From sequence record PV112478.1: a DNA stretch of 64,000 bases; one strand, written 5' to 3'. The notes under the pieces were generated by a model. The model saw only the letters and a list, made by a program, of their open reading frames with translations, was not told the origin of the DNA and did no database searches. The position numbers were made by a program, and so were the translations under genes. Shown here one piece after another: positions 464 through 14,974 of this stretch (its first letter is position 1; every line of letters starts with the position of its first letter).

Positions 464-467
464 CATA
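464..467 (-). promoter_or_regulatory. Late-promoter-like TATG(AC)
   Basis: TTTTTATGACG lies 9 nt after the hairpin and upstream of the 417 gene. TATG is the phiKZ late promoter core. Confidence 0.55.
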
Positions 468-476
468 AAAACACAA

Positions 477-500
477 GAGTAGGGCCGATCGGCCCTACTC
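477..500. terminator. Perfect 24-bp palindrome, intrinsic terminator-like hairpin
   Basis: GAGTAGGGCCGATCGGCCCTACTC is self-complementary, intergenic and followed by a T-rich tract on the - strand. Confidence 0.75.
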
Positions 501-524
501 GCTATGAACAACCTATAAAACAAT

Positions 525-719
525 TCAACTACCGGAATCGTCTTCGCTAGTCCTGTCTTCTAAAAGAAAAGAACCATCCAGACCCTTTTCCGATAAGAAC
601 CCAAGTGCGGCTTCCTGATAGTTTTCTACTTCTTCAAAGAAAACGATAGCCTCCCCCAAATCAATTCTGGAAAGAAAATAAACGTTCTCTCGCACAGTAT
701 CCTTGTAGATATAAATCAT
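525..719 (-). CDS. Small acidic protein translationally coupled to a tailspike (possible assembly chaperone)
   Basis: TGATG stop/start overlap with the 719..2704 gene; 64 aa MIYIYKDTVRENVYFLSRIDLGEAIVFFEE... Confidence 0.6.
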   Translation of the reverse strand: MIYIYKDTVRENVYFLSRIDLGEAIVFFEEVENYQEAALGFLSEKGLDGSFLLEDRTSEDDSGS

Positions 720-2704
720 CACAAATACCCTAAAGTCGGATGTTGATCGGAAAACCAAACCGCGGGGAGCTTAACTTGAATAGTACCAACGAAACCAGTA
801 AAGTTAAGTCCAGCGTACCCATACTGGGATGTCCCGGTATCGCAAGACAACATGTAAGTGCCCATGTAATTGTCTGCGGTAAGGGTGATACCTGTTTTTG
901 TCAGCGAGTTTAAAATATCTTGCTGTGGACCTAGGGCATAGCCACTATAGTTTTCACTCATTGACACCACGTTAGTCGTGGCATTATTAGTAAAAGACTG
1001 AGATGAGACTAAACGACATACACCGCGTACGTAAACATTACCGGTAGTTGCGGAGCCAGCTTTGACCGAACAGGATACATGAAATTTCTGTTGGCTATTA
1101 CTGTTATTAATCGGCGTACCCCAGAGAAGGTTAACTGAGTTAGTTGTACTTGTGGCAGTGATTGTCACCGGGATCAAACCGTCAGAGTCTGCATCTGCTG
1201 CAGAACCGTAGACAATGGTTGAGCCGTTAGCAACTACGTACCATTGCCCAATCGCTCTGGCGGTCGGTAAGGCCGCACCCGCGGTACCATTAAATAATAA
1301 CCCGGTACTATTCAAAATGTAACCGTCTGTGGTATCGTAGGATGGCAGAAAACGATAGGTTTGTCCACGTAACGGGTAACGTATTCTGACTTTGATCAGG
1401 TTAGTGGGATCGTACGCCTTATAACTCCCATAAGCACTATTAACATGTGGGCCGTAACAGAAAATGTTTACGTTGTCAAGGTCGATAGCGGTGCGTGTAG
1501 TGGTCGCATAACCGATCGTTCTGACGCCGCGGTAAGGGTCGTTAACAAACGCGTACATGAAGATATTTCCGCCAATCATTTTAAAGTTATTTTCGCCAGC
1601 GCCAGTTGTACGAGATGGGCAGTTGACCAAATAGCGGAAACCTTCAACATGACATTCAATCAATGTATCTTGACCGATGTTCACTGGCGAATAAAAAACA
1701 ACATCATTTGTGTTATAGTCGAAACTACAACCAAAATATTTAAACATGTGGACAGTATCGTTTCGGTAAACCCCACCCAAATAGTTATCACCGATGAGGC
1801 AGTTAACAAAACGCATGTTCTCACCGGAGTTAACGCAGTTTGTACCGGCGTCAGTTACTACACCGTACGCGTTACGATAAAAATCACAATTCTCCACGAT
1901 ATCTAAATACGTATCGGTAGAACCTATCCTAATTCCACCGTAAAATTGCGCGACTTTTACACCCGTGATTTTTACTTCACGGACGTGAACATAACCACCA
2001 GACGGGTATGTTGTATTTCCTAAAGAAATACCGTGGAACGTAGTTTTGTCGTATCCGGGGCCTAAAATGAAAAGTGCGTTAGTGTCCAACACTTCGGTGT
2101 AGCTGGCAGAACTCCCTGCGTTATTAGTGAAGGGGTTTGCTGCGGATCGAGTAAGCCCAGTAAACTCGCCGGTTATTTCTACGCCGTTCCCGGTAGTAAA
2201 GGCACTAAAATCCCAAGTCTGGTTAGTGTCAACAATAACAGAAACAAACGGCGGAATACGCACTGTCGCTGTCATTTTATAAACGGTTTCGCCGGTAGCG
2301 TTATCTAACGGTGGTACACGCAACCGGTAAGTTCCATTTGCGATATAACCCCTGGCAATAACGACTTTGATGATGTCGCTGGTTATTTTATTAATACATT
2401 GCGCTAAATTATTCGCGGAAACCGAAAAACCGGCCATCCAGACGTTAATTGGTTTACTTGTGTCAAGTAGCCAGTTAGCTCCTTTGGTGGTTTTAAATAC
2501 GCTGTAGTCGTTATCTGCGGCCGTTGAACTCGCTCTGTACGTCATTATTTCGTTTACGTCAGGTCCGCCCACAACCGCTCGTTTTAGTAGAACGCGCTGA
2601 CCGTCAAACCAGGGTTCTAAAGACCGTAACTCAGTTACGGACCCCACGGTCAAAAGAGAATATTCCCCATTACTCCCTCGTGGCTTATTAAATTCAGTGA
2701 GCAT
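719..2704 (-). CDS. Tailspike/polysaccharide depolymerase (beta-helix) with a short TSP3-like head
   Basis: Head MLTEFNKPRGS; tailspike neck motif ELRSLEPWFDGQ; beta-helix motifs SGENMRFVNC and GCSFDYN; S/T/N/G-rich. Confidence 0.85.
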   Translation of the reverse strand: MLTEFNKPRGSNGEYSLLTVGSVTELRSLEPWFDGQRVLLKRAVVGGPDVNEIMTYRASSTAADNDYSVFKTTKGANWLLDTSKPINVWMAGFSVSANNLAQCINKITSDIIKVVIARGYIANGTYRLRVPPLDNATGETVYKMTATVRIPPFVSVIVDTNQTWDFSAFTTGNGVEITGEFTGLTRSAANPFTNNAGSSASYTEVLDTNALFILGPGYDKTTFHGISLGNTTYPSGGYVHVREVKITGVKVAQFYGGIRIGSTDTYLDIVENCDFYRNAYGVVTDAGTNCVNSGENMRFVNCLIGDNYLGGVYRNDTVHMFKYFGCSFDYNTNDVVFYSPVNIGQDTLIECHVEGFRYLVNCPSRTTGAGENNFKMIGGNIFMYAFVNDPYRGVRTIGYATTTRTAIDLDNVNIFCYGPHVNSAYGSYKAYDPTNLIKVRIRYPLRGQTYRFLPSYDTTDGYILNSTGLLFNGTAGAALPTARAIGQWYVVANGSTIVYGSAADADSDGLIPVTITATSTTNSVNLLWGTPINNSNSQQKFHVSCSVKAGSATTGNVYVRGVCRLVSSQSFTNNATTNVVSMSENYSGYALGPQQDILNSLTKTGITLTADNYMGTYMLSCDTGTSQYGYAGLNFTGFVGTIQVKLPAVWFSDQHPTLGYL

Positions 2705-2733
2705 TGTAACACCTCAAAATTGAAAGACTAAGT

Positions 2734-2737
2734 CATA
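2734..2737 (-). promoter_or_regulatory. Late-promoter-like TATG(AC)
   Basis: TTTTCTATGACT lies 4 nt after the hairpin, upstream of RBS GAGGTG and the ATG at 2704. Confidence 0.55.
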
Positions 2738-2741
2738 GAAA

Positions 2742-2772
2742 AATCAGAGGAGACGCATAGTCTCCTCTGATT
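2742..2772. terminator. Intrinsic terminator-like hairpin
   Basis: AATCAGAGGAGAC-GCATA-GTCTCCTCTGATT, 13-bp stem. Confidence 0.8.
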
Positions 2773-2778
2773 AATTTA

Positions 2779-5046
2779 CTACTCGTTAATAAACCAATGG
2801 ACGGGCGCTTTAACGTAGATAGTTCCTACTAACCCGGTGAAATTGATAGATACCGCTATTTGATCAGAATACGCAGCCTTCCTCACTGACATTGGGAATG
2901 CAATATAACCCACATCAGTTAAACCGGTTAATGCTTTCTTCTTATTAAAGTGAGCGTCTACTCCGACAGAGGTTCCCTGAGTATTCGCGATTTGAGATCG
3001 ACTTTCCGTGATAGTAGCGACGCTACCTGATACAGTACCGGAGTACGTTGGCGTGTCGTAGTATTTAATGTAGTTATAAAGATAAAGTCCGGGTGTATAG
3101 TCACTCCCTAATCTTACCGAAATTGCAGATGCAAAAAGTGGATTAAAGATATTCGCAGAATCGAATTTTTTCAAACATTCGAGAGTAATGATATTACTTG
3201 CTAAAGTGGAAGTGATTTTAATAGTCGCAAGGCCGTCTTCGTCCAAGGCGGCGAGTTTAGTGATAGTTACCCCTGTTCCCGTAAAACTAAACTTATGTTG
3301 AGTTCGAGTATCGGTTTGGTTGTTGAAATCAGTATCCGTTGCCACTGTATCCCATTTCCAGCGCCACCCCATCAAAGATTGTTGATAATCACTCAAAACA
3401 GGAGTAGTGGCGCGAAGGGAACCGGATGGTGCTAATGTATTGTATCCGCCCTTAACAACGCAAACAAACTGGTCCCCGGTATTATCTCCGTAACCAGCAA
3501 CGGTTCCCTGGCCTGTGAGGGAGTAATAAGGAGCCCAATAGTAATCCGATAAAGACCATGCGCACTCGTTGAATGTTACCCCAAGATCTTTTGTCGGACA
3601 AGAAATCATTTGGCGTGCGTGGTTCGCTCTAAAAGTGTCAGAGTAATAAGGAGAGGTGTACTGGTTAGGGTACATGTAGACGCCATTAAACATGAAAATG
3701 TTTCTAATATTCCATGTGTTACCCGGATAGATCTGCGTAAGCTGTGGCTGGTTTACCAACATATTACCAAAGCCTTCGATCCAACCTCTTTCCATCGTGA
3801 CACGTGTATTAGACGAATAAAGTGCACACCTAAAAACGTCCCCTGCTGTGTAATCCAAACTCGTGTCAATGATACTAACGATCGCGCCCTTATCAAACCA
3901 GAAATGAGCTGTGTCGTTATTCCCAATAACCCCGTTAATGAATACTACCTTTTCACCAGAGTTAACAATTGTTTGGTTAGTTTCGAACCACACTCCGATT
4001 TGGTTATTTGCAATATTGAAATCAGAAAAAGTATTGCAATAAAAGTTAATGTAGTTGATACGCAGACCGTACTTAAATCCTTCCACCCTGAAATTCTTGA
4101 CATTAAGATCCCTGACAGACATCGGGAGCGTTCCATAGGTGGCAATTCTAATACCCGCGGCGTTACTTGTTGACTTTCCTGGGCCTAAAATAAAGAAAGA
4201 CCCGCCATTAGCGTTAAAGAAATTCGACCCCTGAGTATCGACGAAATTACTATCCGGCATCTGGCCGGCTGCAACACCAGTGATACCTTCATTCGTGATA
4301 ACGATCGCGTCATCGTTTGTTAGAGAAGTAACTAAATAAATATTCCCATAAGAGACTAAAGAAAAGAACGAGGGGATTTTAACTTGTTTCTCTAGCACGT
4401 ATTTATCAGAAAACTGAGGAAAGAAAATCTGAGTGCTAACACCGAAAGTATTCTTGTTAGCAGAAACTTTGGCGGTAGTAAAATCAACAATTTTTTGGAT
4501 TGCGGCTCCTGTACCCGTACCGTCGCTTTTCACTCCGGCCAAACGAATATCTACCCCTTTAGAGACATCAACTTTCCAACGAGCACCTTTGGGAGTCACC
4601 ATAATTGAGAAGTCATTATCAGCGGAAGCAACGTCGCTAGAATCATAATTGGCAATAATATTGATTAGCGGACCGCCTTGTACAGCACGCTCTAAAATAA
4701 TTTTTTGTCCTGCGTACCACGGCTCAAATTTTCGCAGATCGGCGATAGTCGCGACAGATACTGTTGTCAGTGTAGATGGAAACGCCAGAACAGTAAAAGA
4801 ACCTGCGTTCGTAGTTACCGTGGCTGTGGTTCCGGTAACAGAAACGCCACTCACAACTCCGGTGATAGCGGTAGTATTAAAAATCTCTTTTGATTCTGGA
4901 AGAATAGCAAAAGAGTAATTTGTCAGGTCGTTACCGACTTCCAGTGAACCGATAGACGTTTGCGGGATGTTCAATAACTGAGAAAGAACCTCGCCGCTTG
5001 ATTGTACGGATGTACTTCCACCCGGCTGAATAAAATTAGTTTGCAT
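2779..5046 (-). CDS. Tailspike/polysaccharide depolymerase with a Kuttervirus TSP3-like head
   Basis: N-terminus MQTNFIQPGGSTS...GNDLTNY...TNAGS; neck DLRKFEPWYAGQ; beta-helix SGEKVVFING; C-terminus paralogous to 719..2704 (NFTGLVGTIYVKAP). Confidence 0.85.
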   Translation of the reverse strand: MQTNFIQPGGSTSVQSSGEVLSQLLNIPQTSIGSLEVGNDLTNYSFAILPESKEIFNTTAITGVVSGVSVTGTTATVTTNAGSFTVLAFPSTLTTVSVATIADLRKFEPWYAGQKIILERAVQGGPLINIIANYDSSDVASADNDFSIMVTPKGARWKVDVSKGVDIRLAGVKSDGTGTGAAIQKIVDFTTAKVSANKNTFGVSTQIFFPQFSDKYVLEKQVKIPSFFSLVSYGNIYLVTSLTNDDAIVITNEGITGVAAGQMPDSNFVDTQGSNFFNANGGSFFILGPGKSTSNAAGIRIATYGTLPMSVRDLNVKNFRVEGFKYGLRINYINFYCNTFSDFNIANNQIGVWFETNQTIVNSGEKVVFINGVIGNNDTAHFWFDKGAIVSIIDTSLDYTAGDVFRCALYSSNTRVTMERGWIEGFGNMLVNQPQLTQIYPGNTWNIRNIFMFNGVYMYPNQYTSPYYSDTFRANHARQMISCPTKDLGVTFNECAWSLSDYYWAPYYSLTGQGTVAGYGDNTGDQFVCVVKGGYNTLAPSGSLRATTPVLSDYQQSLMGWRWKWDTVATDTDFNNQTDTRTQHKFSFTGTGVTITKLAALDEDGLATIKITSTLASNIITLECLKKFDSANIFNPLFASAISVRLGSDYTPGLYLYNYIKYYDTPTYSGTVSGSVATITESRSQIANTQGTSVGVDAHFNKKKALTGLTDVGYIAFPMSVRKAAYSDQIAVSINFTGLVGTIYVKAPVHWFINE

Positions 5047-5060
5047 TTATTTTTCCTTTA

Positions 5061-5079
5061 AGGAGGGGAACCCCCTCCT
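5061..5079. terminator. Hairpin between tailspike genes
   Basis: AGGAGGGG-AAC-CCCCTCCT. Confidence 0.55.
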
Positions 5080-5083
5080 CCTT

Positions 5084-7840
5084 TTACTCTGTCTCAAAAC
5101 GGAATAGTGACAATCTAGATATGTTTACCGTACCTGTAATGTCAGAAAAAGTCGCTGCAACACGAGCAAACGCTGCGCCAACAGGTGCCCTTATTTTCAC
5201 CGGACTAGAAGCGATGAATCGTGTTGTACCGGCGGAGTAATTTGGTAGGGTAGTGTCGGAAAATACACTTCCCATCGCGGTGTTGTTACCGATTACTTGG
5301 CCACCAGATAATAATACTTTTTGATCATTGTAAAAATAAACGTATGGGGTAATACGGTTATTCCCCGTCGAGTTCAGTAGCTGCATTGCGGCAACAACCC
5401 CGAACGTATCTCCTGCTTTACAGGCAAAATACTCTGTTCCAACTAAAGTCACGTTACTCGCAGAACTTGTACCCGTTAAAGCAAGAACTTTACCTGTAAC
5501 ATCTGTTCTGTCGGCAATTACCCCTGTCATACCCGCGATGTATCCGACAGAAAATTTCGCTAACGTAGAGGAAGTACTCGTAACAGTTGTCCCAGTAGTT
5601 TCCGCACTGAAATCAAAACCGCTATTAATAATAGCGGCCGCGGACGGGACGTTAGGGTAGGGATCTTTCACATACCCACTAACCGCCACGGGTTTACCGG
5701 AAGAGTGTAAATAGAGATCTTCGGTATATGGTTTGACTTCGTGTTTGATCTCAGAGCCATTCCAATGCACTGCAACCTGGTTTCCGTTAAAGAGTGGTCG
5801 AGACGGGCTGTTGGCCAGTCCTAGTGTAGAGTCTGTTTTCTGACCAGAACGCAAACGAGGAAGGAAGTCGCAATTGGTAAAATAGACCGCACAGTTAGAC
5901 GGCGAGCCAACTACATCTAATACGTACCCATTCCAAGCTTCGGCGTGACAGTCAGTAAACTTAACTGCGTTATAACCAGACGATCCCGTAATGACTAATA
6001 TACTACCGTTAGTAAAGTCAAAGCTGCAGTTCATGAAAGAAACATCAAAACCAGGTGCTGCAAGATATACGTGATGTTCGTTGGTACCGCCAAATGTACA
6101 GTTAGTAAACGACATTCGTTCGCCGGAGTTACTGGACGTTGTAGACGGAACATTCAAACTGATACCGTTTTGTTCGAAACGACATTTAGTCGCTGAGAAT
6201 AGATAAGTATCAACGGAAGAAAACGTCAGTGCACGATAGCATTCGGTCACAACAACATTACGGAAAGAAACGTTTCTGGCGTTGGACATACTAGCTGCTT
6301 CGTTACCGATAAATATCCCAGAAAGAGTAGTTATAGCACGACCTTGCCCATCCAGTCGCAATACACCGCCATCAGCCGAAAGGTTCTCACCCTCCCAAAG
6401 ATTGACATTCGTTAAGGTGTCAGTATTTTGGAACTTGATCAGGTACGACCCTGTAAAGTTAGACGATGCAACAATGTTAACGTTACCTTTCGCAACGATA
6501 CTGATTGATGTCGGTGCGACAATTGTTGCAGATATCAGATAACTCCCGGCTGAAATGTTGATCGAAGGGCGACTGTAGAAATTAGTCCCTATTGTTAATT
6601 TCTGGACATATGCGATCGCACGTTGTAAAGGTACCGTGATATCTGTCCCTGGTTGAGCACCCCAAAATGCAACATTAATTTCTGAATTGGGGATAACACG
6701 TTCCCAATAGAAATTCCCACCAACAATGACTGTACCATAGTCTTCCGTCGCACCCCCGCCAATATGACCAATAAATTCCCCGCCGCCAATTTTAGTACCA
6801 GCTGCGTAAGATTTTACTTTAATACGTTCTCCCTCAAACCCCGGTTGACGGGACCGCAGTGAATCCACCGATTCCACGCCGTAAACCCCTTGAACGACTT
6901 GCTCTAAACTCACACCATAACTGGTATTGACCTTTGTCGCGCCCGTCGTTTGTCCCAGTGTCAAAAGAATTTCTGCTGGCGTTCCCGATACCTGTGCGGT
7001 GATGACCGACCGAGAGCCACCCAGTAAGACTTCAACAATGTCGTTAGTATTCAGCGCTTTCGAAAGGTTAATCTTCAATCCGGTGCTATCAACTTCATAG
7101 TGCTTATTCAGGACTTGTTTTGAGCCGTTGATGTAAATAGCAGGGATTGTTTTGAATGTCCACGGAGGAGTAAGTGACGTTTCTCCGCCCACCGCCGCGC
7201 CGTCATTATACAGCCACGTTACGTTGACGTAGTCGGTAATGCCAGGTTCTACTGGCGTGATAGGCGAACCCGGGTAAGGTCTCACGTAGAAGACAACGAA
7301 AGCACCCGCCGTTAACGGCCCTTTTAATTTGACTTTATTCGATAACCGATCAAATGTGTAGTTCAACCCCTTGAACTGATGACCACCGTTCAAGAACATC
7401 TCTGAGACATCGAAACAGTCGAAGGGCAATGCGATTTCCGTTTCGCCACCGTTAGCAGAACCGTTGTTATAAAGGTAACTGACGTATGACGTGTAGGAGC
7501 CGAACTTACCGTCCGCCATCATTTTTCCGGTACCGTAGATAACCGGAGTATTGTCCTTATAGACAGCCGTGGCAGAGGCACCGTTGACGTTAATAAACGC
7601 TGCAGCGTAGAATTGGCTATCGTCAGTATAGACGTAAAAGATTTCATCTTTGACAGTAGCCGCAATACCTTCTGCGAGGGTTTCAAAAGCATTTTCAAAG
7701 AGAAGATTTGATCGAAGATTATTTAACGTGGTACGATATGTTTCATTTTCTGCTCCCGCTACTGCCACTGGCAATAGAGCAGATTCTGGAACAATACCCT
7801 TACTCGAAAGTTCGGAAATTTTTCTTGTGTTATTGGCCAT
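5084..7840 (-). CDS. Hub tailspike: anchor module, two XD-like (GGET) branching modules, neck domain and beta-helix depolymerase
   Basis: Likely start MANNTRKISEL at 7840 (RBS GAGG; the ORF track start at 7885 overlaps the TATG motif). FENAF; YNNGSANGGETEIALPF and YNDGAAVGGETSLTPPW; LRSRQPGFEGER..GGGEF..YWERV; SGERMSFTNC. Confidence 0.88.
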   Translation of the reverse strand: MANNTRKISELSSKGIVPESALLPVAVAGAENETYRTTLNNLRSNLLFENAFETLAEGIAATVKDEIFYVYTDDSQFYAAAFINVNGASATAVYKDNTPVIYGTGKMMADGKFGSYTSYVSYLYNNGSANGGETEIALPFDCFDVSEMFLNGGHQFKGLNYTFDRLSNKVKLKGPLTAGAFVVFYVRPYPGSPITPVEPGITDYVNVTWLYNDGAAVGGETSLTPPWTFKTIPAIYINGSKQVLNKHYEVDSTGLKINLSKALNTNDIVEVLLGGSRSVITAQVSGTPAEILLTLGQTTGATKVNTSYGVSLEQVVQGVYGVESVDSLRSRQPGFEGERIKVKSYAAGTKIGGGEFIGHIGGGATEDYGTVIVGGNFYWERVIPNSEINVAFWGAQPGTDITVPLQRAIAYVQKLTIGTNFYSRPSINISAGSYLISATIVAPTSISIVAKGNVNIVASSNFTGSYLIKFQNTDTLTNVNLWEGENLSADGGVLRLDGQGRAITTLSGIFIGNEAASMSNARNVSFRNVVVTECYRALTFSSVDTYLFSATKCRFEQNGISLNVPSTTSSNSGERMSFTNCTFGGTNEHHVYLAAPGFDVSFMNCSFDFTNGSILVITGSSGYNAVKFTDCHAEAWNGYVLDVVGSPSNCAVYFTNCDFLPRLRSGQKTDSTLGLANSPSRPLFNGNQVAVHWNGSEIKHEVKPYTEDLYLHSSGKPVAVSGYVKDPYPNVPSAAAIINSGFDFSAETTGTTVTSTSSTLAKFSVGYIAGMTGVIADRTDVTGKVLALTGTSSASNVTLVGTEYFACKAGDTFGVVAAMQLLNSTGNNRITPYVYFYNDQKVLLSGGQVIGNNTAMGSVFSDTTLPNYSAGTTRFIASSPVKIRAPVGAAFARVAATFSDITGTVNISRLSLFRFETE

Positions 7841-7882
7841 TGCAAGAAACCTCATTGTCGGCAATAGGGCTGTAAAAATAGT

Positions 7883-7886: not shown

Positions 7887-7896
7887 GGAAAACAAA

Positions 7897-7924: not shown

Positions 7925-7933
7925 GAGTTTATT

Positions 7934-9901
7934 TTATTGAAGGAATGCTTTGACAGGGCCCAAGTAAACGGAACCTGATGTTTGATAATGACGAAGACCC
8001 ACGTGAACAGTCGCTGCCCCAGGCGGAACAATTACCGATCCGGAGCATTTTACAACATTAGATGCACTACCTGTCGTCCCTGAAAGATTCGTCCCAATTA
8101 CGTTATGGGTAATTTCTACACCTTCAATGTCGTAAAATGTATAACCGAAATAACAACCGCCATTTGTGGAAACAATATTTTCCCAATAGAGCGTGGTAGC
8201 TAAATAAAGAGTTTGTCCTGGCGAGCAGCGTAAACGTTGGCCAAATAACGTTGTCAATCCCCCAGTCGTTGTTGTGCTAAGCACTTTCGCAGAGGCGCCA
8301 ATTGATTTTGAGTTATCGTAAGTTATCGTAGGTTGGAAAGCGGTACCCGTTGCTGAATATATCGTAGACCAACCTGTCAAATCTGCGGTATTATAATTAT
8401 AATTTCTCAGCGGGTTCGTATAATCGCCGATATTTACCATGTCATTATTTCCGTAGATATCAAAATAATTATCGACAACTTTGACGAGGGCACCGCTACC
8501 TGTACATTTAACAACATCAACGGCCGCCATCTTATTGTATTTTCCAGCAGGACATCCCACTAGTCGGAAAATACAAGGACCTGATAAAGTGAACCATACA
8601 GGTTTACCTGCGGTTGTTCCTTGGTTCGCATACGTGGTGGCAACGTCATTTCCGCCGTCAATAAACGTGTTTTGGATATTGACAAACGGTTTTCTTTTTG
8701 AAGAGGTATAAAGCATCTTACCGTACGGGTTAGAGGAATTGTTCTCGAAATGACACCCTATGAAATTAATATTTCCCGTAGAGATATCAAACACAAGATC
8801 ACTATAGTCAAAAGAGTGCGAATAAAAATACGCATCAAGATACTGACCGGTACTGGGAACGTAGACACCCGCAGCGTTCCCGTTAGCGTTTAATCCATTA
8901 TACGTTACGCCACCGAAGATTGAAATGTTTTCCCCTGCGTCGTTGACGCAATTGAAATGCCAGCCATATCGCCAGAACTTACCCACAACCGGCTGTATAA
9001 ATTGCAGAAGGTACGTCGACTGCGAGCCGATATAAATGTTGTCACGAAATCCTTCCACCCACACTTTAGCTAACACCGTGGACACTTGGGTGTTTGTACC
9101 ATCGGGGAAGAACCCAATACCATCTAATGTCCCTACAGGTGTTATAGGTGGTTTCGAAACGGAAGGTCCTCCGTAAGGGCCTTGTAAACGAATTTCCAGC
9201 TCTGATCCTAAATTGTAAGTGGCGCCAGGGACACCTACGACCCGAACAGCATACCCGGTAGTCATTAATGAACCATCTACCACAAACCTTGAACGGTCCA
9301 TGATCAATTTTCCGGAAGCTGCGTAGACAGTAATTTGAGAAGTGATTCGGTAACGAGCATTCGATTCTTTAGAACGAACAGTATAACCTAACTTCAGTAA
9401 TTCTAAGGTTTTTTGTACTGCAACAGTATCATCCGTTATACCGTCTCCCTTCGCCCCATTACTTTCAAAGGTCGTTTGGCCAGAAATGTCATTCAGGGAA
9501 CCAGCACCCATGGGAATAATGCTCATACCGGTACTTTCTGTAACTGATGCTGCAGCTCTCATTTGTCTGCTCGTCGGTAACCTGACTTGTTCATTGTCAT
9601 AACCCAGAATAGGATTAGCTACTCCGTCATTATTTTGGTATTGCAACACCCACAGCTTCGCTGCGCTTTCGTACACGAAAAATACGTCCCCTGACGTTGT
9701 TCCGTTCAGGCCCGCATCCACAGACAGGAAAGCATTCTCGAAACCCAGCGTTTGACGAAGGTCGTTAATTTTGGTGGATTTAGTGAAGGGAACTCCTGCA
9801 CTGGTTTTGGCGTTAATCGGAACGACGTCATTCTCTTTGATGACACCTGCGTCACCGAGTTCAGAAATTTTGATTCCGATAGAATCTGAAGTCTTAGGCA
9901 T
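7934..9901 (-). CDS. Tailspike/depolymerase with anchor module
   Basis: KISELG...DLRQTLGFENAF; pectate-lyase-like entry motif GAKGDGITDDTVAVQ; AGENISIF and SFDYS. Confidence 0.88.
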   Translation of the reverse strand: MPKTSDSIGIKISELGDAGVIKENDVVPINAKTSAGVPFTKSTKINDLRQTLGFENAFLSVDAGLNGTTSGDVFFVYESAAKLWVLQYQNNDGVANPILGYDNEQVRLPTSRQMRAAASVTESTGMSIIPMGAGSLNDISGQTTFESNGAKGDGITDDTVAVQKTLELLKLGYTVRSKESNARYRITSQITVYAASGKLIMDRSRFVVDGSLMTTGYAVRVVGVPGATYNLGSELEIRLQGPYGGPSVSKPPITPVGTLDGIGFFPDGTNTQVSTVLAKVWVEGFRDNIYIGSQSTYLLQFIQPVVGKFWRYGWHFNCVNDAGENISIFGGVTYNGLNANGNAAGVYVPSTGQYLDAYFYSHSFDYSDLVFDISTGNINFIGCHFENNSSNPYGKMLYTSSKRKPFVNIQNTFIDGGNDVATTYANQGTTAGKPVWFTLSGPCIFRLVGCPAGKYNKMAAVDVVKCTGSGALVKVVDNYFDIYGNNDMVNIGDYTNPLRNYNYNTADLTGWSTIYSATGTAFQPTITYDNSKSIGASAKVLSTTTTGGLTTLFGQRLRCSPGQTLYLATTLYWENIVSTNGGCYFGYTFYDIEGVEITHNVIGTNLSGTTGSASNVVKCSGSVIVPPGAATVHVGLRHYQTSGSVYLGPVKAFLQ

Positions 9902-9927
9902 TATACTACCCTCAAGTGAAAGAATCT

Positions 9928-9931
9928 CATA
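9928..9931 (-). promoter_or_regulatory. Late-promoter-like TATG(AG)
   Basis: TTTTGTTTCGTATGA, identical to the motif at 12307-12321 on the + strand. Confidence 0.6.
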
Positions 9932-9938
9932 CGAAACA

Positions 9939-9970
9939 AAAGAGAAGAGGGCTAAGACCCTCTTCTCTTT
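9939..9970. terminator. Intrinsic terminator-like hairpin
   Basis: AAAGAGAAGAGGG-CTAAGA-CCCTCTTCTCTTT, 13-bp stem. Confidence 0.8.
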
Positions 9971-9976
9971 ATTAGA

Positions 9977-12190
9977 TTACCAACTAGAAAGAGCAGCTCT
10001 TACCCAAGTATTTGTTGCGATACAGACGTAGTAATAACTACTATCAGCCGCCCATTGTCCTACAGTACCGGGAGCTGTTGCATTAGCAGGTACTGCGACT
10101 TTAACGCCAACTGGATTCCCTGCCACGGTTATGGCTCTTGAAAAATAACCATCCCGCCACTGAAGAGCACTTGTCCCAAAATCATAAAGGTTCGTCGCAT
10201 TAGGGACTACTGTCCCCATGAAGTTGAACTGACTGGCGCCTCCGTTAGCAACAAAATTCATACCGGATAAATAACTGGTTATTGTCATCGGTCCGGTGTT
10301 ACCAAGTAAGATTCTACCCCCTAAAGTCGTGTTACCGTAAGGATAAAAATCCAGTCTCCTGTCTCCACTTGTAGTGTTATTATTTCCTATTTGGAGAATA
10401 TTACCACTGGAGATAGAGGCTGTTGTTTTAATAAGGTAACCGCTTATCGTCCCATCCTGAGCCACCGAAAGAATAGGTGTTGTCGGGTTGAAAGCACCAT
10501 CTGTATTGGTGTAATAAATAGAAAGGGCGCTGTTATTATCGCTATCCACATCGATAATAAATTTTCTCGTCGCTACTTTGACGTCGTTAATGATCAGGCC
10601 GCTAGTAATTCTTCTCGTAAAGTTATTGATGGCGCAGTTTATCAGCTGATAAGCTCTTTTACCTTGTGTACTAGCGCTGACGTCAAAGATAGGGGCTACT
10701 GTAGAGTTACCGGAAACTTCAGAGAATGCGCTGGAGAAATAACAGCTATCGAAAACACGCCCGGTATTAGTACTTGTACCAAATCTAATCATTGGTACGT
10801 GGACAGCGCTGTCATAACCAACTGCGGACTTTCTTAAAGTTTGGAAAGTACATCCAGTGAATTTAATAATCCCTTGGTTGATGAATCCTAATTCGTAAGT
10901 GCCCGCTGAATCTGTTCCGCCAGAACCATTATCGGTAAAAATTACTGTATCGAAATTAAACTGCGTACCGCCGCCCAAATTAAACCATTTTGCACCGTAG
11001 AAGTGAGTCTCAATATGACCGCCTTCAAATTTAATGTTGTGGTGCGTACTGGAGGTAGGAGTTGGGTCTACTTTAATAGCTACGTAGTTTTTAGTGTACG
11101 TCGTTTCAATGTGCGGTCTGATGAACACAATGTTGTTGGAGTTGTCCGTGGCCTGAGGTAAGAAATGAATCCCCGTAGCAGGATTATTTGTATCATTATC
11201 ATCAACGGCAACAAACCCAGTCATGTAGATACAGTCGAAAACCGCATCGTAACACTGACCGAATGTTAAAGCTTTAGTGGGCGACATGAAGTTAAGGTTT
11301 GAAAATCTTCCACCGACAGCCATTGAGTTAGCGGTCACTTCACTTCCGAGTTTAATGTAATAAGCAAAAATACCCGGCTCTTTAATAAAAGTTAACCCGT
11401 CCATTTCAAGACGGCCGCCCGTGAAAGTAAAGAGAAAATCTTTATTCACGTTAGAAGAAATATAAGCGCCTTTTCCTAGAATCCTAAACCTTGGTTTTCC
11501 AGTCTCATAAGTGATGGCACTTAGGTCTTTAACTATTTTACTGTCGAGTCGATATTTACCTGGCGGGAAGAATAACCACCCCGAGGCATACCGTTGAGCG
11601 TTAGAGATATTGATTTCTTTTTGATAAATACATTTATCTATTGCTGCGCTAACCGCCGGAGACCAATCCCAAGTAGAGGGGTCATTAGGATTATCTTTTT
11701 TGGTGACTAGACTTGAAAACTCCCAAATATTGATAGGTAGGCTATTTAATGCTTTAGCCGCGCTCTCCGCGCTTAACTCGATCTCTTTACGTTGATAGCC
11801 AACTTCATCAGCCCCATTATTAGACATAATTCCATCAACGTCACCACGAATTACTTTTATACCGTAACCGGTATAATTAATTTTAGCAGTACCGTCCGAG
11901 TTAAAAATCTGTTCTGCAACTCCGTTGCGGTTGACATATGCTTTAACTGTCGTTTTTTCTGCGTCGGCATAAACGTAGAAAATTTGATTAGGAACAGTAC
12001 CCGCAAGACCCGCTACTGTCGTAGTGAATGCGTTTTCGAAATTTAGCAGGGAGCGTAAATCAGAAATCTCCATCGCTTTAGATTCGGTTATTCCCGCTTC
12101 ATTCTGAGCGATAAATACGACATCAGAATCATTTACCGGTTTCGATGGTCGATCCATTTCACTGAGTTTTACAAAGATCTCACTGGCCAT
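9977..12190 (-). CDS. Tailspike/depolymerase with anchor module
   Basis: KLSEM...DLRSLLNFENAF; NIWEF..DPSTWDWSPAVSAAI and LFFPPGKY tailspike entry motifs; beta-helix body; C-terminal VPANATAPG..GQ..YYYVCIATNTWVR. Confidence 0.88.
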   Translation of the reverse strand: MASEIFVKLSEMDRPSKPVNDSDVVFIAQNEAGITESKAMEISDLRSLLNFENAFTTTVAGLAGTVPNQIFYVYADAEKTTVKAYVNRNGVAEQIFNSDGTAKINYTGYGIKVIRGDVDGIMSNNGADEVGYQRKEIELSAESAAKALNSLPINIWEFSSLVTKKDNPNDPSTWDWSPAVSAAIDKCIYQKEINISNAQRYASGWLFFPPGKYRLDSKIVKDLSAITYETGKPRFRILGKGAYISSNVNKDFLFTFTGGRLEMDGLTFIKEPGIFAYYIKLGSEVTANSMAVGGRFSNLNFMSPTKALTFGQCYDAVFDCIYMTGFVAVDDNDTNNPATGIHFLPQATDNSNNIVFIRPHIETTYTKNYVAIKVDPTPTSSTHHNIKFEGGHIETHFYGAKWFNLGGGTQFNFDTVIFTDNGSGGTDSAGTYELGFINQGIIKFTGCTFQTLRKSAVGYDSAVHVPMIRFGTSTNTGRVFDSCYFSSAFSEVSGNSTVAPIFDVSASTQGKRAYQLINCAINNFTRRITSGLIINDVKVATRKFIIDVDSDNNSALSIYYTNTDGAFNPTTPILSVAQDGTISGYLIKTTASISSGNILQIGNNNTTSGDRRLDFYPYGNTTLGGRILLGNTGPMTITSYLSGMNFVANGGASQFNFMGTVVPNATNLYDFGTSALQWRDGYFSRAITVAGNPVGVKVAVPANATAPGTVGQWAADSSYYYVCIATNTWVRAALSSW

Positions 12191-12316
12191 AATTGTACCT
12201 TACTTTGTCTCTAATAGTCAATTGTACATACGATTGACAGCTTGAAAGAATACGTTTCGGTTTATTATACATTAACTAGAGAAGGATGCGGAAAAGCTCC
12301 TCTCTGTTTTGTTTCG

Positions 12317-12320
12317 TATG
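12317..12320 (+). promoter_or_regulatory. Late-promoter-like TATG(AC)
   Basis: TTTTGTTTCGTATGAC follows an imperfect hairpin (12277-12306), upstream of RBS GGAG and the ATG at 12352. Confidence 0.6.
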
Positions 12321-12351
12321 ACCATTTTCAAATAATAACCGGAGTTAGATA

Positions 12352-14910
12352 ATGTCCGATATTTTTTCTCAAAAGATCTCTGAGTTACAGTCCAGTACAG
12401 GGCCGAGCGAAAACGCTTATTTCCCTCTCTCTGAAGCCAATAGCGACTTCTCAGAAAAAGTGAGTGTCGCCACCTTAAGGGAAACTATTGGTTTTGAGAA
12501 TGCTTTCCCTACCGTCGCTATTGCGTTACTGGCGACTAAAGAAAGTGACGTCTTCTTCGTCTATGAAAACGAAAAGAAAGAAAACGTTTTGGGTTATGTC
12601 AATCAGGGTAATGGAAATTATTCCGCTTTGATGACCGATAGTAACGTGCAACTGCGCTACGCTACGAGTAGTTTCATTGTTAATAGCTTATTCTTTTTGC
12701 GTGGGGCGGAAAGTTTCGAAGAGCTTAGAACAATTAAACCGTGGTACGAAGGACAACGCATTAAACTTAAAAGCTACTACGTTGACGGTTTAACAGGTGG
12801 CGGTGAGTTTGTTGCGCGGTTGACTGTTGGTGTAGATGACAGTGGTGTCATCGCAGCAGGGTCGGGATTCTATTGGGAACGTGTACTCACCGATCCGGTG
12901 ATCTATCCTGAATATTTTGGCGCCGATACCTCGTTATCTGATAATAGTACGGCACTTAGCACCACCTTTAATTACGCCATCGCCAATAAAAAATCGGTCT
13001 GCATTAAAGCGAACATCAAAGTTTCTACGGTAACCATCGCTGGATTTAATTTCACTATTTTTGGGCCGGGGACAATGACCTTCTCTGACCCAAATGGACT
13101 TGTTATCAGTAACGGAAACGCCGGTATTATCGACGGGCCTGCTCTCGTTTTTTCCGGGGTAGGTTCAACTGGAATTACCGTAACGGGCTCTAACAATGTC
13201 GTGGTTCGAAACTGTACTATTTCGAATCATGGTCGAAATGGTGGGGTCTACATTTTAAACTCCAGCAATGTGATGGTCTCCAAGAATACTTTCCTGAACG
13301 CAGCGGGTGATGCGACGTTTGGATCCTCTACCACCGCTGATGTCAATATCTGGGGGACGAATAACGGTTGTTCCGTGGTAGATAACCGGTTTATCTCTGG
13401 AGGTGGCTACGCTATTCAGATTCGTTCGCACGCGTTAGGGGATGTTTCAGTTAATCACGTCATCTCAAGAAACTTCATTGACGGTTACAACAGTTACGGA
13501 ATTAACTGCTACCGAAATAAACAATCGTTGACGGATACGCAGGTATTGAAAAATGTTATTGTTTCTGAAAACGTTATCAGTAACATTTCAGGTAATCGTC
13601 CAAGTAACCCAGCTACTCCCGATGTGTTAATCTTCGGTACTGGCATCTACATGCAAGGCTCCGAAATGTCAACGGTTGTCAATAACACAATCACTAATGT
13701 GTGTACCAACTCTAACAATGACTTGCTGGCGCCTGCCGGAATTGGGGTCACCAACATCGGTAATATTAATATCGCCAACAACACCATTGTCAACTCGGGG
13801 ATGTACGGTATTAAAATCAACGACTCTGTCGGTTTAGGCGATGTTTACGGGCGAGTGATTGTTGAGAGTAATATTATTGACACAGTCGGTACCGATGGCA
13901 TCATGGTCCAGGATCGCAATAACATTTCAGTAACCAACAACTCCATTAAAGGCGCTGCTCGTGACGGAATTAAAATCAATACTTCTCCGTCAAGTCAAAC
14001 CAAAGTAGTTTCCACCGATAAAAAGATTTCCTTTAACAGCCTCAAAACCATCACGGGGATCGGAATCTATATCGAATATTCTCAAAGCTGGTCTATTGAA
14101 AGTAACTGTGTTACCGATTGTGCTCAGGGGTTAGTTTTCCAGTACAGTGCGCACGGTAGAGTGATAGGTAATACTATCGTTAATGCCTCTACGCGGGGCT
14201 ACTACGCACATGTGACAAACACCACACCGGGATCAATCATTTTTACTGAAAATAAATGCTTGAATACCGTCACGCAAATTGCTGTCGAACATCCGATTGA
14301 CTACTACAACAACCCGCAATTGACACCGACGGGGACGTACGCTAATGCGAGAGAAATTACAGCGGATTTACCAGATGTTACGGGTTGCGAAGTCCTGAAT
14401 TTAAAACCCACCGCAGCGATGAATCTGACTGGATTTGCAGGCGGGAAAATTGGGCAGCGCATTACCATATGGGTAAATAATGCATTGGTAACAATGGTAC
14501 AGAGTGGCTCCTTTATTCTAGCTGGGTTGAAAAATAGAAACCCGGGCTATAACAGCGCTGTAACGTTTGTGAAAACAAAAGCAGGGTGGGTCGAAGTAGC
14601 ACAAAGTGGGTACGCAGTCGCTTACATTAACCCAACGTCTGGGAGTTCCGTTACTGTCAGTGACTATACTGGAGGAATCTACATCCAAGGTAGTAGTGCA
14701 CTAGCTAGTCTTTCGGTTACGTTACCTGCTTCCCCCGTGGACGATCAAGTCTGTACTATTTGTTCTCAGAGTGGCGTTACGGCATTGACATTGACGGCAA
14801 ATACGGGACAAAGTATTTTCCCTCCGACCACACCGACTGCCCTTTCTGCGGGCATTTCTATTCAGTATCGGTATCGGGCGGCGGCTAACGGCTGGTTCCG
14901 CTATCAGTGA
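12352..14910 (+). CDS. Tailspike/depolymerase with anchor module, neck domain and right-handed beta-helix
   Basis: KISELQ...TLRETIGFENAF; ELRTIKPWYEGQ..GGGEF..YWERV; many N/I/G beta-helix repeats (NVIVSENVISN, NTIVNSGMYGI); C-terminal TLPASPVDDQ domain. Confidence 0.88.
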   Translation: MSDIFSQKISELQSSTGPSENAYFPLSEANSDFSEKVSVATLRETIGFENAFPTVAIALLATKESDVFFVYENEKKENVLGYVNQGNGNYSALMTDSNVQLRYATSSFIVNSLFFLRGAESFEELRTIKPWYEGQRIKLKSYYVDGLTGGGEFVARLTVGVDDSGVIAAGSGFYWERVLTDPVIYPEYFGADTSLSDNSTALSTTFNYAIANKKSVCIKANIKVSTVTIAGFNFTIFGPGTMTFSDPNGLVISNGNAGIIDGPALVFSGVGSTGITVTGSNNVVVRNCTISNHGRNGGVYILNSSNVMVSKNTFLNAAGDATFGSSTTADVNIWGTNNGCSVVDNRFISGGGYAIQIRSHALGDVSVNHVISRNFIDGYNSYGINCYRNKQSLTDTQVLKNVIVSENVISNISGNRPSNPATPDVLIFGTGIYMQGSEMSTVVNNTITNVCTNSNNDLLAPAGIGVTNIGNINIANNTIVNSGMYGIKINDSVGLGDVYGRVIVESNIIDTVGTDGIMVQDRNNISVTNNSIKGAARDGIKINTSPSSQTKVVSTDKKISFNSLKTITGIGIYIEYSQSWSIESNCVTDCAQGLVFQYSAHGRVIGNTIVNASTRGYYAHVTNTTPGSIIFTENKCLNTVTQIAVEHPIDYYNNPQLTPTGTYANAREITADLPDVTGCEVLNLKPTAAMNLTGFAGGKIGQRITIWVNNALVTMVQSGSFILAGLKNRNPGYNSAVTFVKTKAGWVEVAQSGYAVAYINPTSGSSVTVSDYTGGIYIQGSSALASLSVTLPASPVDDQVCTICSQSGVTALTLTANTGQSIFPPTTPTALSAGISIQYRYRAAANGWFRYQ

Positions 14911-14936
14911 ATCAAAAGACTAAGATAATATAATAC

Positions 14937-14966
14937 AATCGAAGGAGGCTAACTCCTCCTTCGATT
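14937..14966 (+). terminator. Intrinsic terminator-like hairpin
   Basis: AATCGAAGGAGG-CTAACT-CCTCCTTCGATT followed by TTT. Confidence 0.8.
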
Positions 14967-14970
14967 TTTA

Positions 14971-14974
14971 TATG
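14971..14974 (+). promoter_or_regulatory. Late-promoter-like TATG(AC)
   Basis: TTTTTATATGAC lies 4 nt after the hairpin, upstream of the ATG at 15000. Confidence 0.55.

Follow-up and report, generated by a model that had tools for sequence, protein, structure and literature searches.

Terminator-like stem-loops and phiKZ-type late-promoter motifs between the tail-spike genes of Klebsiella phage LPKP23

The tail-spike locus of Klebsiella phage LPKP23 raises the question of how a row of spike genes is expressed and how the same row can be cut and rejoined between phages. LPKP23 is a nucleus-forming phiKZ-like jumbo phage and the source of the 64,000-nt window analysed here (PV112478.1), in which the region 464-14974 is its main tail-spike (capsule depolymerase) array. 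The core of LPKP23 is 99% identical to that of four relatives, whereas only 20-46% of the array is shared. The initial annotation read the array as a series of insulated, portable cassettes, each consisting of a hairpin, a T-run, TATGA(C), a ribosome-binding site and a gene. The unit between the genes is probably a terminator joined to a late promoter that doubles as a homology patch bounding the exchanged spike pieces.

Architecture of the spike array

The major head protein of LPKP23 groups with those of phiKZ-like phages, and its relative FBKp24 encodes nuclear-shell and tubulin genes (bioRxiv 10.1101/2021.03.02.433402). Because three LPKP23 proteins are homologous to chains of the phiKZ non-virion RNA polymerase (nvRNAP; PDB 7ogp), namely PHIKZ071 (4e-77), PHIKZ074 (5e-67) and PHIKZ055 (1e-64), LPKP23 is predicted to encode a non-virion multisubunit RNAP of its own. 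The spike proteins of the array are characterised by a common N-terminal phrog_27731 domain, tail-protein families and a beta-helix.

On the minus strand, the 5' end of a 1304-aa spike gene with an N-terminal phrog_27731 domain occupies positions 1-417 and exits the window (record 120503-124417). It is preceded by a T-run (476-468) and TATGAC (467-462), which are identical in six relatives and place the predicted +1 at G 464, 47 nt 5' of the ATG at 417. A terminator-like stem-loop (477-500; -20.8 kcal/mol, z -5.6; one compensatory pair) lies 9 nt from this TATGAC and behind the spike gene 719-2704 and an overlapping 64-aa ORF (525-719), apparently a single transcription unit (525-2704) homologous to FBKp24 gp303/gp302. 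The next element, TTTC followed by TATGAC (2732-2741, TATGAC at 2737-2732), is invariant in six phages, with the predicted +1 at 2734, 30 nt 5' of the ATG at 2704; its stem-loop (2742-2772; -21.2 kcal/mol, z -7.6; 4 nt to TATGAC; three compensatory pairs) follows the spike gene 2779-5046. This gene has no TATGA element of its own and is likely co-transcribed with the gene 5084-7840, from which it is separated by a gap of only 37 nt. The stem-loop in that gap (5060-5080; -16.3 kcal/mol, z -1.6) has neither T-run nor TATG, and a ribosome-binding site and the ATG at 5046 come directly after it. The N-terminal part of the protein encoded by 5084-7840 is homologous to FBKp24 gp306, a proposed primary fibre (PMC9700779), whereas the C-terminal part differs.

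Further along the same strand, a T-run and TATGAC (7881-7896, TATGAC at 7886-7881), again invariant in six phages, put the predicted +1 at 7883, 43 nt 5' of the ATG at 7840, and the stem-loop 10 nt away (7897-7924; -23.7 kcal/mol, z -6.9; a compensatory pair) lies behind the spike gene 7934-9901, whose N-terminus resembles FBKp24 gp307. The unit before this gene consists of a T-run and TATGAG (9926-9938, TATGAG at 9931-9926; predicted +1 at 9928, 27 nt 5' of the ATG at 9901), and 7 nt from TATGAG is a stem-loop (9939-9970; -22.0 kcal/mol, z -6.1) behind the spike gene 9977-12190. The FBKp24 homologue of the latter gene, gp308, is encoded on the opposite strand there (9927-12238 aligned with L001 15936-13627, 77%). 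Its promoter-like site is a TATG followed by TA (12227-12230), 37 nt 5' of the ATG at 12190 and without a hairpin, which aligns with TATGAT before FBKp24 gp308. On the plus strand, a T-run and TATGAC (12303-12322, TATGAC at 12317-12322; predicted +1 at 12320) precede by 32 nt the ATG at 12352 of a spike gene (12352-14910) with a right-handed beta-helix and an N-terminus resembling FBKp24 gp309. A stem-loop behind this gene (14937-14966; -18.5 kcal/mol, z -7.0) is 4 nt from the TATGAC at 14971-14976 (predicted +1 at 14974) of the last spike gene of the plus arm (15000-16922). A bidirectional terminator-like stem-loop (16927-16958; -29.6 kcal/mol, z -7.4) with TATG on neither side closes the array.

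All six hairpin/TATGA pairs of the initial annotation were thus found, with purine-rich 5' arms, a spacing of 4-10 nt and TATGAC in five of the units. In each unit, as had also been proposed, a Shine-Dalgarno-like stretch and the ATG of a large ORF follow, 26-47 nt downstream. However, insulation of each spike did not hold, because two of the nine array spike genes lack the element: the gene 2779-5046 and a gene immediately beyond the left edge of the window (L006 18672-20450), which has an upstream hairpin with neither T-run nor TATG. Small ORFs and some spikes are only 1-11 nt apart, so that they must be co-transcribed.

Five of the six stems fold strongly (-18.5 to -23.7 kcal/mol, z -5.6 to -7.6), and these five have the features of intrinsic terminators, a stable GC-rich stem-loop and a T-run just past a stop codon. 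The sixth, 12277-12306 on the plus strand, is weak and imperfect (-13 kcal/mol, z -2.1; equalled by 9 of 200 shuffles) and lies 10 nt from its TATGAC in a divergent spacer that contains no gene end, whereas its FBKp24 counterpart is perfect; like 5060-5080, which lacks a T-run, it departs from the terminator pattern. Stem structure is kept by compensatory double changes, of which there are 3, 1 and 1 pairs in three orthologous sets (small samples of 5-6 sequences each) and more in the FBKp24 comparison beyond these sets. Hairpins of this kind coincide with RNA 3' ends mapped in phiKZ and 201phi2-1 (PMC10914365, PMC11512511).

TATGA as a start signal or a termination signal

The core of phiKZ late promoters is TATG, in which G is +1 and which is read by the non-virion RNAP (PMC4666361, PMC7598289, PMC12809450); the initial annotation named it in this sense, and homologues of PHIKZ055, 071 and 074 in LPKP23 agree with it. 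This core is found before spike genes at seven sites in the window and in 41 copies in the arrays of six phages. Among 34 distinct copies, 28-33 have T at each of the positions -8 to -6, 33 have a pyrimidine at -5, 26 have C at +3 and 31 have T at +8. As a bare word, TATGAC is not enriched in the window (24 against 28.2 expected), nor is TATG itself enriched in upstream regions genome-wide. The 11-nt pattern of T-run plus TATGA, however, matches five times in the window against 0.34 expected, four of these within the array. Genome-wide, TATGA no more than 17 nt past a terminator-oriented stem occurs 12 times against 2.7 expected, and it follows 5 of 9 stems in the array versus 7 of 113 elsewhere (Fisher p = 4e-4), although such counts are not independent because the array copies are paralogous and the six arrays belong to close relatives. 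Of 88 TATGAC copies, 11 lie 12-75 nt before a start codon, versus 38 of 1014 for other TATGNN (OR 3.7, p = 0.001).

TATG(A) after stems could alternatively belong to the phage's termination signal, as a phiKZ-type terminator tail and perhaps a pause site recognised by the polymerase pocket that also reads promoter TATG; the spikes would then be transcribed within long RNAs or from promoters elsewhere. Of 122 terminator-oriented hairpin strands in LPKP23, 35 have TATG between -3 and +12 relative to the stem end, where 12.3 are expected (z 6.9), about equally with and without a gene downstream (18/67 vs 17/55), and it is found on both strands at many convergent terminators. The same holds for 100 kb of phiKZ, where TATG follows 27 of 47 stems against 6.5 expected, mostly with no gene downstream (9/19 with a gene vs 18/28 without). 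Plain TATG is therefore no promoter mark by itself. Because TTAT(G/T) follows the hairpin in the terminator motif published for phiKZ (PMC10914365), part of the TATG signal could belong to termination. However, the array copies behave differently from terminator-type TATG: they lie 2-10 nt from the stem, which terminator-type TATG abuts, and a gene lies downstream of 8 of 9 post-stem TATGAC copies, compared with about 15 of 30 for other TATGN. Several strong terminators, such as 16927-16958 and 41103-41146, have no TATG, and of four convergent-terminator loci only one retains its TATG in FBKp24/Centimanus, whereas TATGAC before virion genes is kept. Moreover, five TATGA copies in the six arrays precede spike genes in divergent spacers without a hairpin, and those before a lone spike gene and the major head gene also have none; the hairpin-free copies in divergent spacers speak for a promoter and against a terminator tail. 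A purely terminating role is accordingly doubtful, and we infer that the units have both promoter and terminator activity.

In the terminator/late-promoter reading, the GC-rich stem-loop and T-run would end the upstream transcript, and the phage non-virion RNAP would start at the G of TATGA(C) late in infection, by analogy with phiKZ. The T-rich stretch from -13 to -4 is common to both signals and may supply easily opened DNA upstream of TATG. That the T-tract serves as a melting element, as the initial annotation suggested, fits a two-step model from the literature, according to which DNA is opened by GP68 via unknown determinants upstream of the TATG that GP123 reads (PMC12809450). The T-run also outlasts the stem, being kept where the stem is decayed or absent (12307-12316; KpZh_1 24151; MJ359 22440).

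The unit is not a spike-specific cassette, because a T-rich tract and TATGAC precede not only the lone spike but, genome-wide, also the genes for the major head protein, internal head proteins and virion structural proteins. TATGAC is kept before head and virion genes in FBKp24 (~70% identity), and TATG precedes the head gene in Moabite and PCH45. Judged by gene type, the motif thus appears where a phiKZ-type late promoter would be expected, before late (virion) genes, and would be the general means by which LPKP23 expresses them rather than a spike speciality. These occurrences before unrelated virion genes also bear on the idea that the stretch is non-regulatory and hitch-hikes with the N-terminal anchor of duplicated spikes and recent recombination of near-identical phages. 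Conserved blocks do run from the stem or T-run through the leader and N-terminal domain, the array copies fall into few paralogous families and four relatives are 99% identical in the core. However, the T-run and TATGA are invariant with respect to FBKp24 amid changed stem bases and adjacent intergenic bases, and a 67-nt patch on the plus strand (14965-15031), comprising T-run, TATGAC, leader and the first ~10 codons, is 97% identical to the start of the otherwise unrelated FBKp24 gp310. Hitch-hiking is hence an unlikely account of the motif.

It is least likely of all that the intergenic elements are ordinary host sigma-70 promoters with host-type terminators. The stems and T-runs match the host intrinsic-terminator pattern, but sigma-70-like sites are unenriched (42 against 36.7 expected), the two found in spike gaps both lie in the divergent spacer 12191-12351 and none at the six units, and transcription of phiKZ-type phages is independent of host polymerase (PMC4666361, PMC7598289).

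Exchange and inversion of spike genes

The same 15-20 nt, or up to ~67 nt with leader and first codons, stand before many spike genes on both strands and can thus act as a homology patch. In the six arrays, 52 of 151 homology-block ends fall within -46 to +6 of TATGA, which makes up 1.5% of positions (~23-fold excess). A block end is held by 29 of 38 motif-bearing gaps versus 8 of 35 others among the 73 gaps, a comparison in which the windows are wider for motif gaps. However, C-terminal domain swaps force block ends near gene ends, so the clustering is no proof of crossover within the unit. Breakpoints form a second cluster 400-700 nt inside the genes, where anchor and enzyme meet. The pairing of upstream with downstream units varies. 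Reshuffling of the array is borne out: the unit bounds exchanged pieces, but the commonest exchange is that of a C-terminal domain with or without its hairpin, not of a complete cassette from hairpin to gene. The unit and the junction between N-terminal anchor and C-terminal enzyme would together delimit what is exchanged, most simply by general homologous recombination of the phage, for which a UvsX-like gene is present within the window, and with no dedicated invertase.

The identical 15-mers of the initial annotation, 9927-9941 on the minus and 12307-12321 on the plus strand, belong to inverted repeats of 19 nt (95% complementary). Their left arm (9927-9945) and right arm (12303-12321) lie in two motif copies and flank a 2.4-kb segment (9946-12302) containing a stem-loop, a spike gene, its promoter-like site, a spacer and the weak stem-loop. 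Comparison of genomes shows that this spike gene, with its own start site between two inverted motif copies, has been flipped between phages: the segment is inverted relative to its flanks in FBKp24, and in MJ359 the start of its gene is inverted. The proposed freedom of order and orientation is thus seen as swaps and this one inversion, but orientation changed only for the gene beside the divergence point; no further change of orientation was found among the six arrays, all of which keep a single divergence point.

Because inverted repeats flank a tail-spike gene found in both orientations among related phages, the segment resembles a programmed invertible element such as Mu G or P1 C, in which an invertase acting on the 19-nt repeats would vary host range. 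This is very unlikely. No recombinase-like ORF was found in or beside the array, whose ORFs belong to spike families or, for the 64-aa ORF, match no family; a Gin/Cin-type invertase gene is thus absent from the array ORFs examined. A complete gene and its TATG lie between the repeats, so that the flip joins no alternative C-termini to a constant N-terminus, and because the whole gene turns round with its own start site, its expression need not change. Furthermore, the repeats themselves represent a motif that precedes many genes, and each sequenced genome has a single orientation.

A fuller combination can be proposed only tentatively: a natural, extended phiKZ-type late promoter that displays the needs of the polymerase besides TATG (T-rich -13 to -4, A+2, C+3, T+8) and at which polymerase released at the T-run could restart a few bases further on, gene-less TATG as a pause or termination aid recognised by the same pocket, and the same unit as a crossover site at which nucleus-forming jumbo phages insert, replace or invert depolymerase genes.

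Relation to known systems and implications

The units share the TATG core with phiKZ late promoters, here 26-65 nt before virion genes in a phage with nvRNAP homologues, and in both the hairpin is dispensable, phiKZ P119L lying in a divergent AT-rich spacer without a hairpin as five array copies do. Whereas no conservation has been reported outside TATG in phiKZ (PMC4666361), the conserved stretch is longer at the predicted starts here (T at -8 to -6, pyrimidine at -5, A+2, mostly C+3, T+8). Like the intrinsic terminators of phiKZ and 201phi2-1, the stems are GC-rich intergenic stem-loops, many of them bidirectional and often followed at once by TATG (PMC10914365, PMC11512511); unlike these, LPKP23 stems have a purine-rich 5' arm and a true T-run, and the array TATGA is set off from the stem. 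The terminator tail is not treated as a promoter in either study.

The closest analogue is the PeSL (promoter-early stem-loop) terminator/promoter cassette of T4-like phages, a composite motif mediating modular shuffling (PMC2839356, PMC4122927). In both cases stem-loop and promoter recur between the genes of a hyperplastic region (here in 38 of the 73 gaps of the six arrays), differences between close relatives are bounded by the motif (with gene ends and motif position confounded here), each cassette has its own start and stop and leaves its neighbours undisturbed, and the phage possesses a recombination system of its own. However, PeSLs are sigma-70-like early promoters with ~100 bp conserved and flank small non-essential ORFans, whereas the present units have a 15-20 nt core of the late phage-polymerase type and host-recognition genes as cargo. 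Mini-circles have been shown for PeSLs; an inversion is seen here, a word absent from the text of PMC2839356. Since the units have no -35/-10 and the motif is late-type, they are an analogue of PeSLs, not a member. Morons of lambdoid phages, with their own promoter and terminator, are likewise single-gene transcription units within a phage genome, but their flanks are not conserved linkers, whereas here a repeated motif flanks essential virion genes. Mu G and P1 C (Gin/Cin) also have inverted repeats around tail-fibre DNA found in both orientations, yet the present segment has no constant and variable exons, no invertase gene among the array ORFs, and is inverted between genomes rather than within one. 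Anchor/enzyme breakpoints and the shared phrog_27731 domain are as in Klebsiella depolymerase domain swapping, with anchors conserved at the N-terminus and enzymes varying at the C-terminus (phiKp24 branched fibres, PMC9700779); that work concerns protein architecture, whereas the present comparisons add the other limit of the swapped piece, at the intergenic unit.

LPKP23 and its relatives supply dozens of natural copies in which the conserved context is longer and the relation to a terminator is fixed, so that the question of what, in addition to the four core bases, makes a phiKZ-type late promoter specific (PMC4666361, PMC12809450) can be approached by transcript-end mapping and structures. 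For annotation, the units provide a simple transcription-unit rule and a warning that the ATG within TATGAC is at times mistaken for a start codon. For phage evolution, the comparison locates the cutting and rejoining of the spike set in a multi-depolymerase jumbo phage: one site is the anchor/enzyme junction, the other the intergenic unit, and a single inversion lies between oppositely oriented motif copies. A role of the unit as crossover site, if true, would explain why genomes otherwise 99% identical carry differing sets of spikes.

Stem-loop and TATGA(C) units in the spike array and elsewhere in the genome

The window is 100% identical to positions 124001-188000 of the genome of Klebsiella phage LPKP23 (PV112478.1), a jumbo phage of 300.7 kb. 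Genes for a nuclear-shell protein and a tubulin are present in its relative FBKp24 (phiKp24; bioRxiv 10.1101/2021.03.02.433402), which has 14 predicted depolymerase fibres in a branched set (PMC9700779). Window positions 1-16922 contain seven large ORFs and the start of an eighth, and the array extends about 5.3 kb further to the left. Six of these window ORFs have the phrog_27731 N-terminal domain in common, and several match tail-spike, depolymerase or beta-helix families.

All six pairs of a hairpin and TATGA described in the initial annotation are present where it placed them. Five of the six RNA stems are strong (-18.5 to -23.7 kcal/mol, z of -5.6 to -7.6); the sixth, at 12277-12306, is imperfect (-13 kcal/mol, z of -2.1), and its place is the divergent spacer, which contains no gene end. 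Each TATGA has a ribosome-binding site and start codon 26-47 nt 3' of it. The idea that every spike gene has a unit of its own holds for six of the nine LPKP23 array genes and fails for the other three: the gene at 9977-12190 has TATGTA upstream without a hairpin, and those at 2779-5046 and at 18672-20450 of L006, the part of the record to the left of the window, have a hairpin without a T-run immediately 5' of the ribosome-binding site.

As a plain word, TATGAC shows no enrichment in the window (24 against 28 expected), and therefore the signal lies in its position and context. Two motif searches used degenerate patterns of 11 and 15 nt derived from the window copies, and all other conservation is given as per-position counts rather than as a consensus. 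The 11-nt pattern, T-run plus TATGA, has 5 matches against 0.34 expected; a scan of viral_contigs with the 15-nt version gave scattered single matches only, which were taken as noise and set aside. TATGA just after terminator-oriented stems occurs 12 times genome-wide against 2.7 expected, at 5 of 9 in the array and 7 of 113 elsewhere. For genome-wide scans a crude ORF caller was used, of whose stop codons in the window 50 of 53 match the record annotation, and the rest of the record was scanned piece by piece without joining the pieces. TATGAC lies intergenic and in sense orientation 12-75 nt 5' of a start codon in 11 of 88 cases, compared with 38 of 1014 for other TATGNN (odds ratio 3.7, p = 0.001). 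The genes behind it include a lone spike-like gene, two virion structural genes, the major head gene, an internal head gene and others, so that the unit is not specific to spikes. Several of these non-array sites have a stem, then a pyrimidine or T-rich tract, then TATGAC; no hairpin accompanies the TATGAC of the major head gene or of the lone spike.

The unit is also conserved among relatives. In two non-array units, the TATGAC and the following T-run are kept in FBKp24 at about 70% identity in the region, and the stems carry compensatory changes; a terminator without TATG adjoining these two units keeps the same state in FBKp24. FBKp24 also retains the TATGAC upstream of the major head gene, and Moabite and PCH45 have a TATG about as far from that gene. 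In the six arrays of LPKP23, FBKp24, KpLz_1_41, KpZh_1, KpLz-2_45 and MJ359, 41 TATGA sites lie 26-47 nt before spike ORFs. With the G of TATG as predicted +1, their 34 distinct copies, in which the search itself fixed positions -3 to +2, have T at -8 to -6 in 28-33, a pyrimidine at -5 in 33, C at +3 in 26 and T at +8 in 31. Three orthologous sets show no variation in the T-run and TATGAC; in the same sets the stems and loops differ, with both bases changed in 3, 1 and 1 pairs. Five copies in the six arrays have no hairpin, every one of them in a divergent spacer.

The ATG contained in TATGAC at 7883-7885 shares its frame with the spike ORF, and the same is true at L001 11115 (FBKp24), L010 9733 and L013 14393. 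As a result ORF finders lengthen the spike gene, giving 5084-7885 where the record annotation gives 5084-7840. If transcripts begin at the G, this ATG would be unusable as a start codon. A 64-aa ORF at 525-719 (-), which overlaps by one base the stop of the spike gene 719-2704, has no family match and is kept in relatives (gp302 of FBKp24); an 85-aa ORF lies behind another spike gene in relatives. Both may encode assembly helpers.

Probable late promoters beside terminator-linked TATG

The premise of phiKZ-type transcription is reasonable because LPKP23 proteins match the solved chains of the phiKZ non-virion RNA polymerase (nvRNAP; PHIKZ071 at 4e-77, PHIKZ074 at 5e-67 and PHIKZ055 at 1e-64) and the LPKP23 major head protein falls among those of phiKZ-like phages. 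The nvRNAP genes map to other parts of the genome than 26145-32279. The window has a second, more divergent beta-like gene at 26145-30632. The 1495-aa beta-like protein of the region 26145-32279 (-) has no more than weak matches to cellular beta subunits and does not match the solved phiKZ nvRNAP. Also in this region is a 543-aa protein with a weak Rpb1 domain-1 match; these two are probably virion RNA polymerase subunits. Adjoining the nvRNAP genes outside the window (L008 30605-32710), a 701-aa protein may contain an intein, since a short part of it matches intein-type sequences found in replicative helicases.

TATG by itself is not enriched upstream of genes genome-wide (18 against 14.4 in divergent gaps, 28 against 35 in co-directional ones), and the reading of every TATG as a promoter was therefore dropped. 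TATG might instead belong to the terminator. It starts -3 to +12 from the stem end in 35 of 122 LPKP23 hairpin strands that follow a co-directional ORF (12.3 expected, z of 6.9), at the same rate with a downstream gene (18/67) as without (17/55), and is at chance level in wrong-strand hairpins (11/107). Many of these strands belong to convergent terminators that carry TATG in each direction. A sequence scan of 100 kb of phiKZ, as distinct from mapped transcript ends, shows an even stronger association, with TATG at 27 of 47 terminator-like strands (6.5 expected) and at 18 of 28 without a downstream gene. The enrichment in both phages is in line with the terminator motif published for phiKZ, in which TTAT(G/T) comes after a stem-loop (PMC10914365). 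Because it occurs with or without a gene, TATG beside a stem is not by itself a promoter, and stem-abutting TATG is read as a separate, terminator-linked feature. At the convergent terminators 45402-45429, 50365-50401, 54838-54873 and 60063-60094, TATG abuts the stem with no gene behind it, on both strands at two of them; candidate roles are termination or pausing, or an antisense start.

The array sites are distinct from this feature in several respects. They lie 2-10 nt off the stem, with no abutment; of nine TATGAC words that follow a stem, 8 are upstream of a gene, compared with about half for other TATGN; copies without a hairpin recur, and the validated phiKZ promoter P119L is likewise hairpin-less; and the array sites are conserved, TATG at convergent terminators being kept in FBKp24/Centimanus at only one of four loci. 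For these reasons, the TATGA(C) sites of the array are read, with moderate confidence, as late promoters, and we infer terminator activity for the array stems. Host-type promoters show no excess, and a literature search for transcriptomes of nucleus-forming Klebsiella phages found none.

In phiKZ, the four bases TATG are necessary and not sufficient (PMC4666361). From a 2026 structure, a two-step order has been suggested: GP68 opens the DNA near -11 via unknown determinants, after which TATG on the open non-template strand is read by GP123 (PMC12809450). In the array, positions -13 to -4 are the terminator T-run, which is kept beside the decayed stem (12307-12316) and in two hairpin-less copies; in the remaining hairpin-less copies these positions are AT-rich, not T-rich. 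At the level of sequence, this pattern would fit the earlier suggestion that the T-run serves as a melting element of the promoter.

Two other signals were seen. The motif TATATCAC, followed by a short conserved tail, lies in intergenic regions before three '-' genes (20284-20298, 44840-44854 and 56475-56489, all on the - strand), and this class has 6 matches at up to 2 mismatches against 1.09 expected. A like stretch, which resembles the published phiKZ middle-promoter element, lies behind the major-head terminator in LPKP23 (L007 about 18100), FBKp24, Moabite, PhiEaH1 and phiKZ, making this a candidate middle-promoter class. The exact 13-mer AGGTTAATCGTCT occurs twice, at 18007-18019 (-) before gene 17584-17970 and at 32297-32309 (-) before 30648-32279, a beta'-like polymerase piece, and may be another start signal.

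Inversion and exchange of array segments

The two identical 15-mers noted on opposite strands are indeed there, and form the core of an inverted repeat with 19-nt arms at 9927-9945 and 12303-12321, separated by 2357 nt. Between the repeats lie the stem 9939-9970, the spike gene 9977-12190 with its own TATG site, a spacer and the weak stem 12277-12306. The segment is reversed in FBKp24 relative to the same flanking genes (9927-12238 against L001 15936-13627, 77%). When aligned in gene sense, homology runs from motif copy to motif copy and includes the 'spare' stem, which is perfect in FBKp24. KpLz-2_45 has the LPKP23 orientation over the whole segment; MJ359 has the gene start in the FBKp24 orientation, and only its N-terminal 290 nt or so align. 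A predicted start site and terminator are retained per gene in either orientation. The supposed reshuffling of the array is seen as swaps and this one inversion, the only orientation change among the six arrays, all of which keep '-' and '+' arms around a single divergence point. A programmed invertase switch was rejected: no invertase-like ORF was found within the array, and there is no exon arrangement. A UvsX-like recombinase gene, named from the annotation of its FBKp24 and Centimanus orthologues, lies at 47966-49381.

Over 41000-61000, LPKP23 is 98.9-99.5% identical to MJ359, KpZh_1, KpLz_1_41 and KpLz-2_45; only 20-46% of the array is shared with these relatives, at 85-94% identity. Because the shared array blocks, at 85-96% identity, differ so much more than the 99% core, array pieces seem, from sequence identity, to come from more distant donors rather than from within-lineage shuffling alone. 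Among homology blocks of at least 150 nt and 80% identity in the six arrays, 52 of 151 block ends fall in the zone from -46 to +6 around the first T of TATGA, which makes up 1.5% of positions; they cluster at two places, the stem's outer edge and the T-run. A second, 2.5-fold excess lies 400-700 nt into the genes, at the junction of the N-terminal anchor and the C-terminal enzyme part. Block ends occur in 29 of 38 motif-bearing gaps and 8 of 35 others, the windows being wider for motif gaps. Upstream units (gene end and stem) and downstream units (leader and N-terminus) are variously combined, nine downstream types occurring with more than one upstream type. Several blocks begin exactly at the T of TATGAC, and at 14965-15031 a 67-nt patch, reaching from the T-run through roughly the tenth codon, has 97% identity with FBKp24 in genes that are otherwise unrelated. 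What is exchanged most often is the stretch between the anchor/enzyme junction and the intergenic unit: a C-terminal domain with or without its terminator, and not the whole hairpin-to-gene cassette that had been envisaged. A swapped C-terminal domain must in any case end close to the stop codon, and the clustering therefore marks where the boundaries lie and does not establish crossovers inside the motif.

Relation to known systems

The phiKZ-type late promoter core, hairpin terminators and depolymerase domain swapping are all known parts. Their combination most resembles the promoter-early stem-loops (PeSLs) of T4-like phages, which are composite terminator/promoter motifs bounding exchanged modules (PMC2839356, PMC4122927). 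However, the promoter type differs and falls outside the PeSL definition, and the array unit is therefore an analogue of PeSLs, not a member. A limited literature search found no paper on terminator-late promoter units as recombination boundaries in nucleus-forming phages, nor on inversion between promoter copies. The array copies provide natural material for the question of late-promoter specificity, and their comparison shows concretely how an array of several spike genes becomes rearranged.
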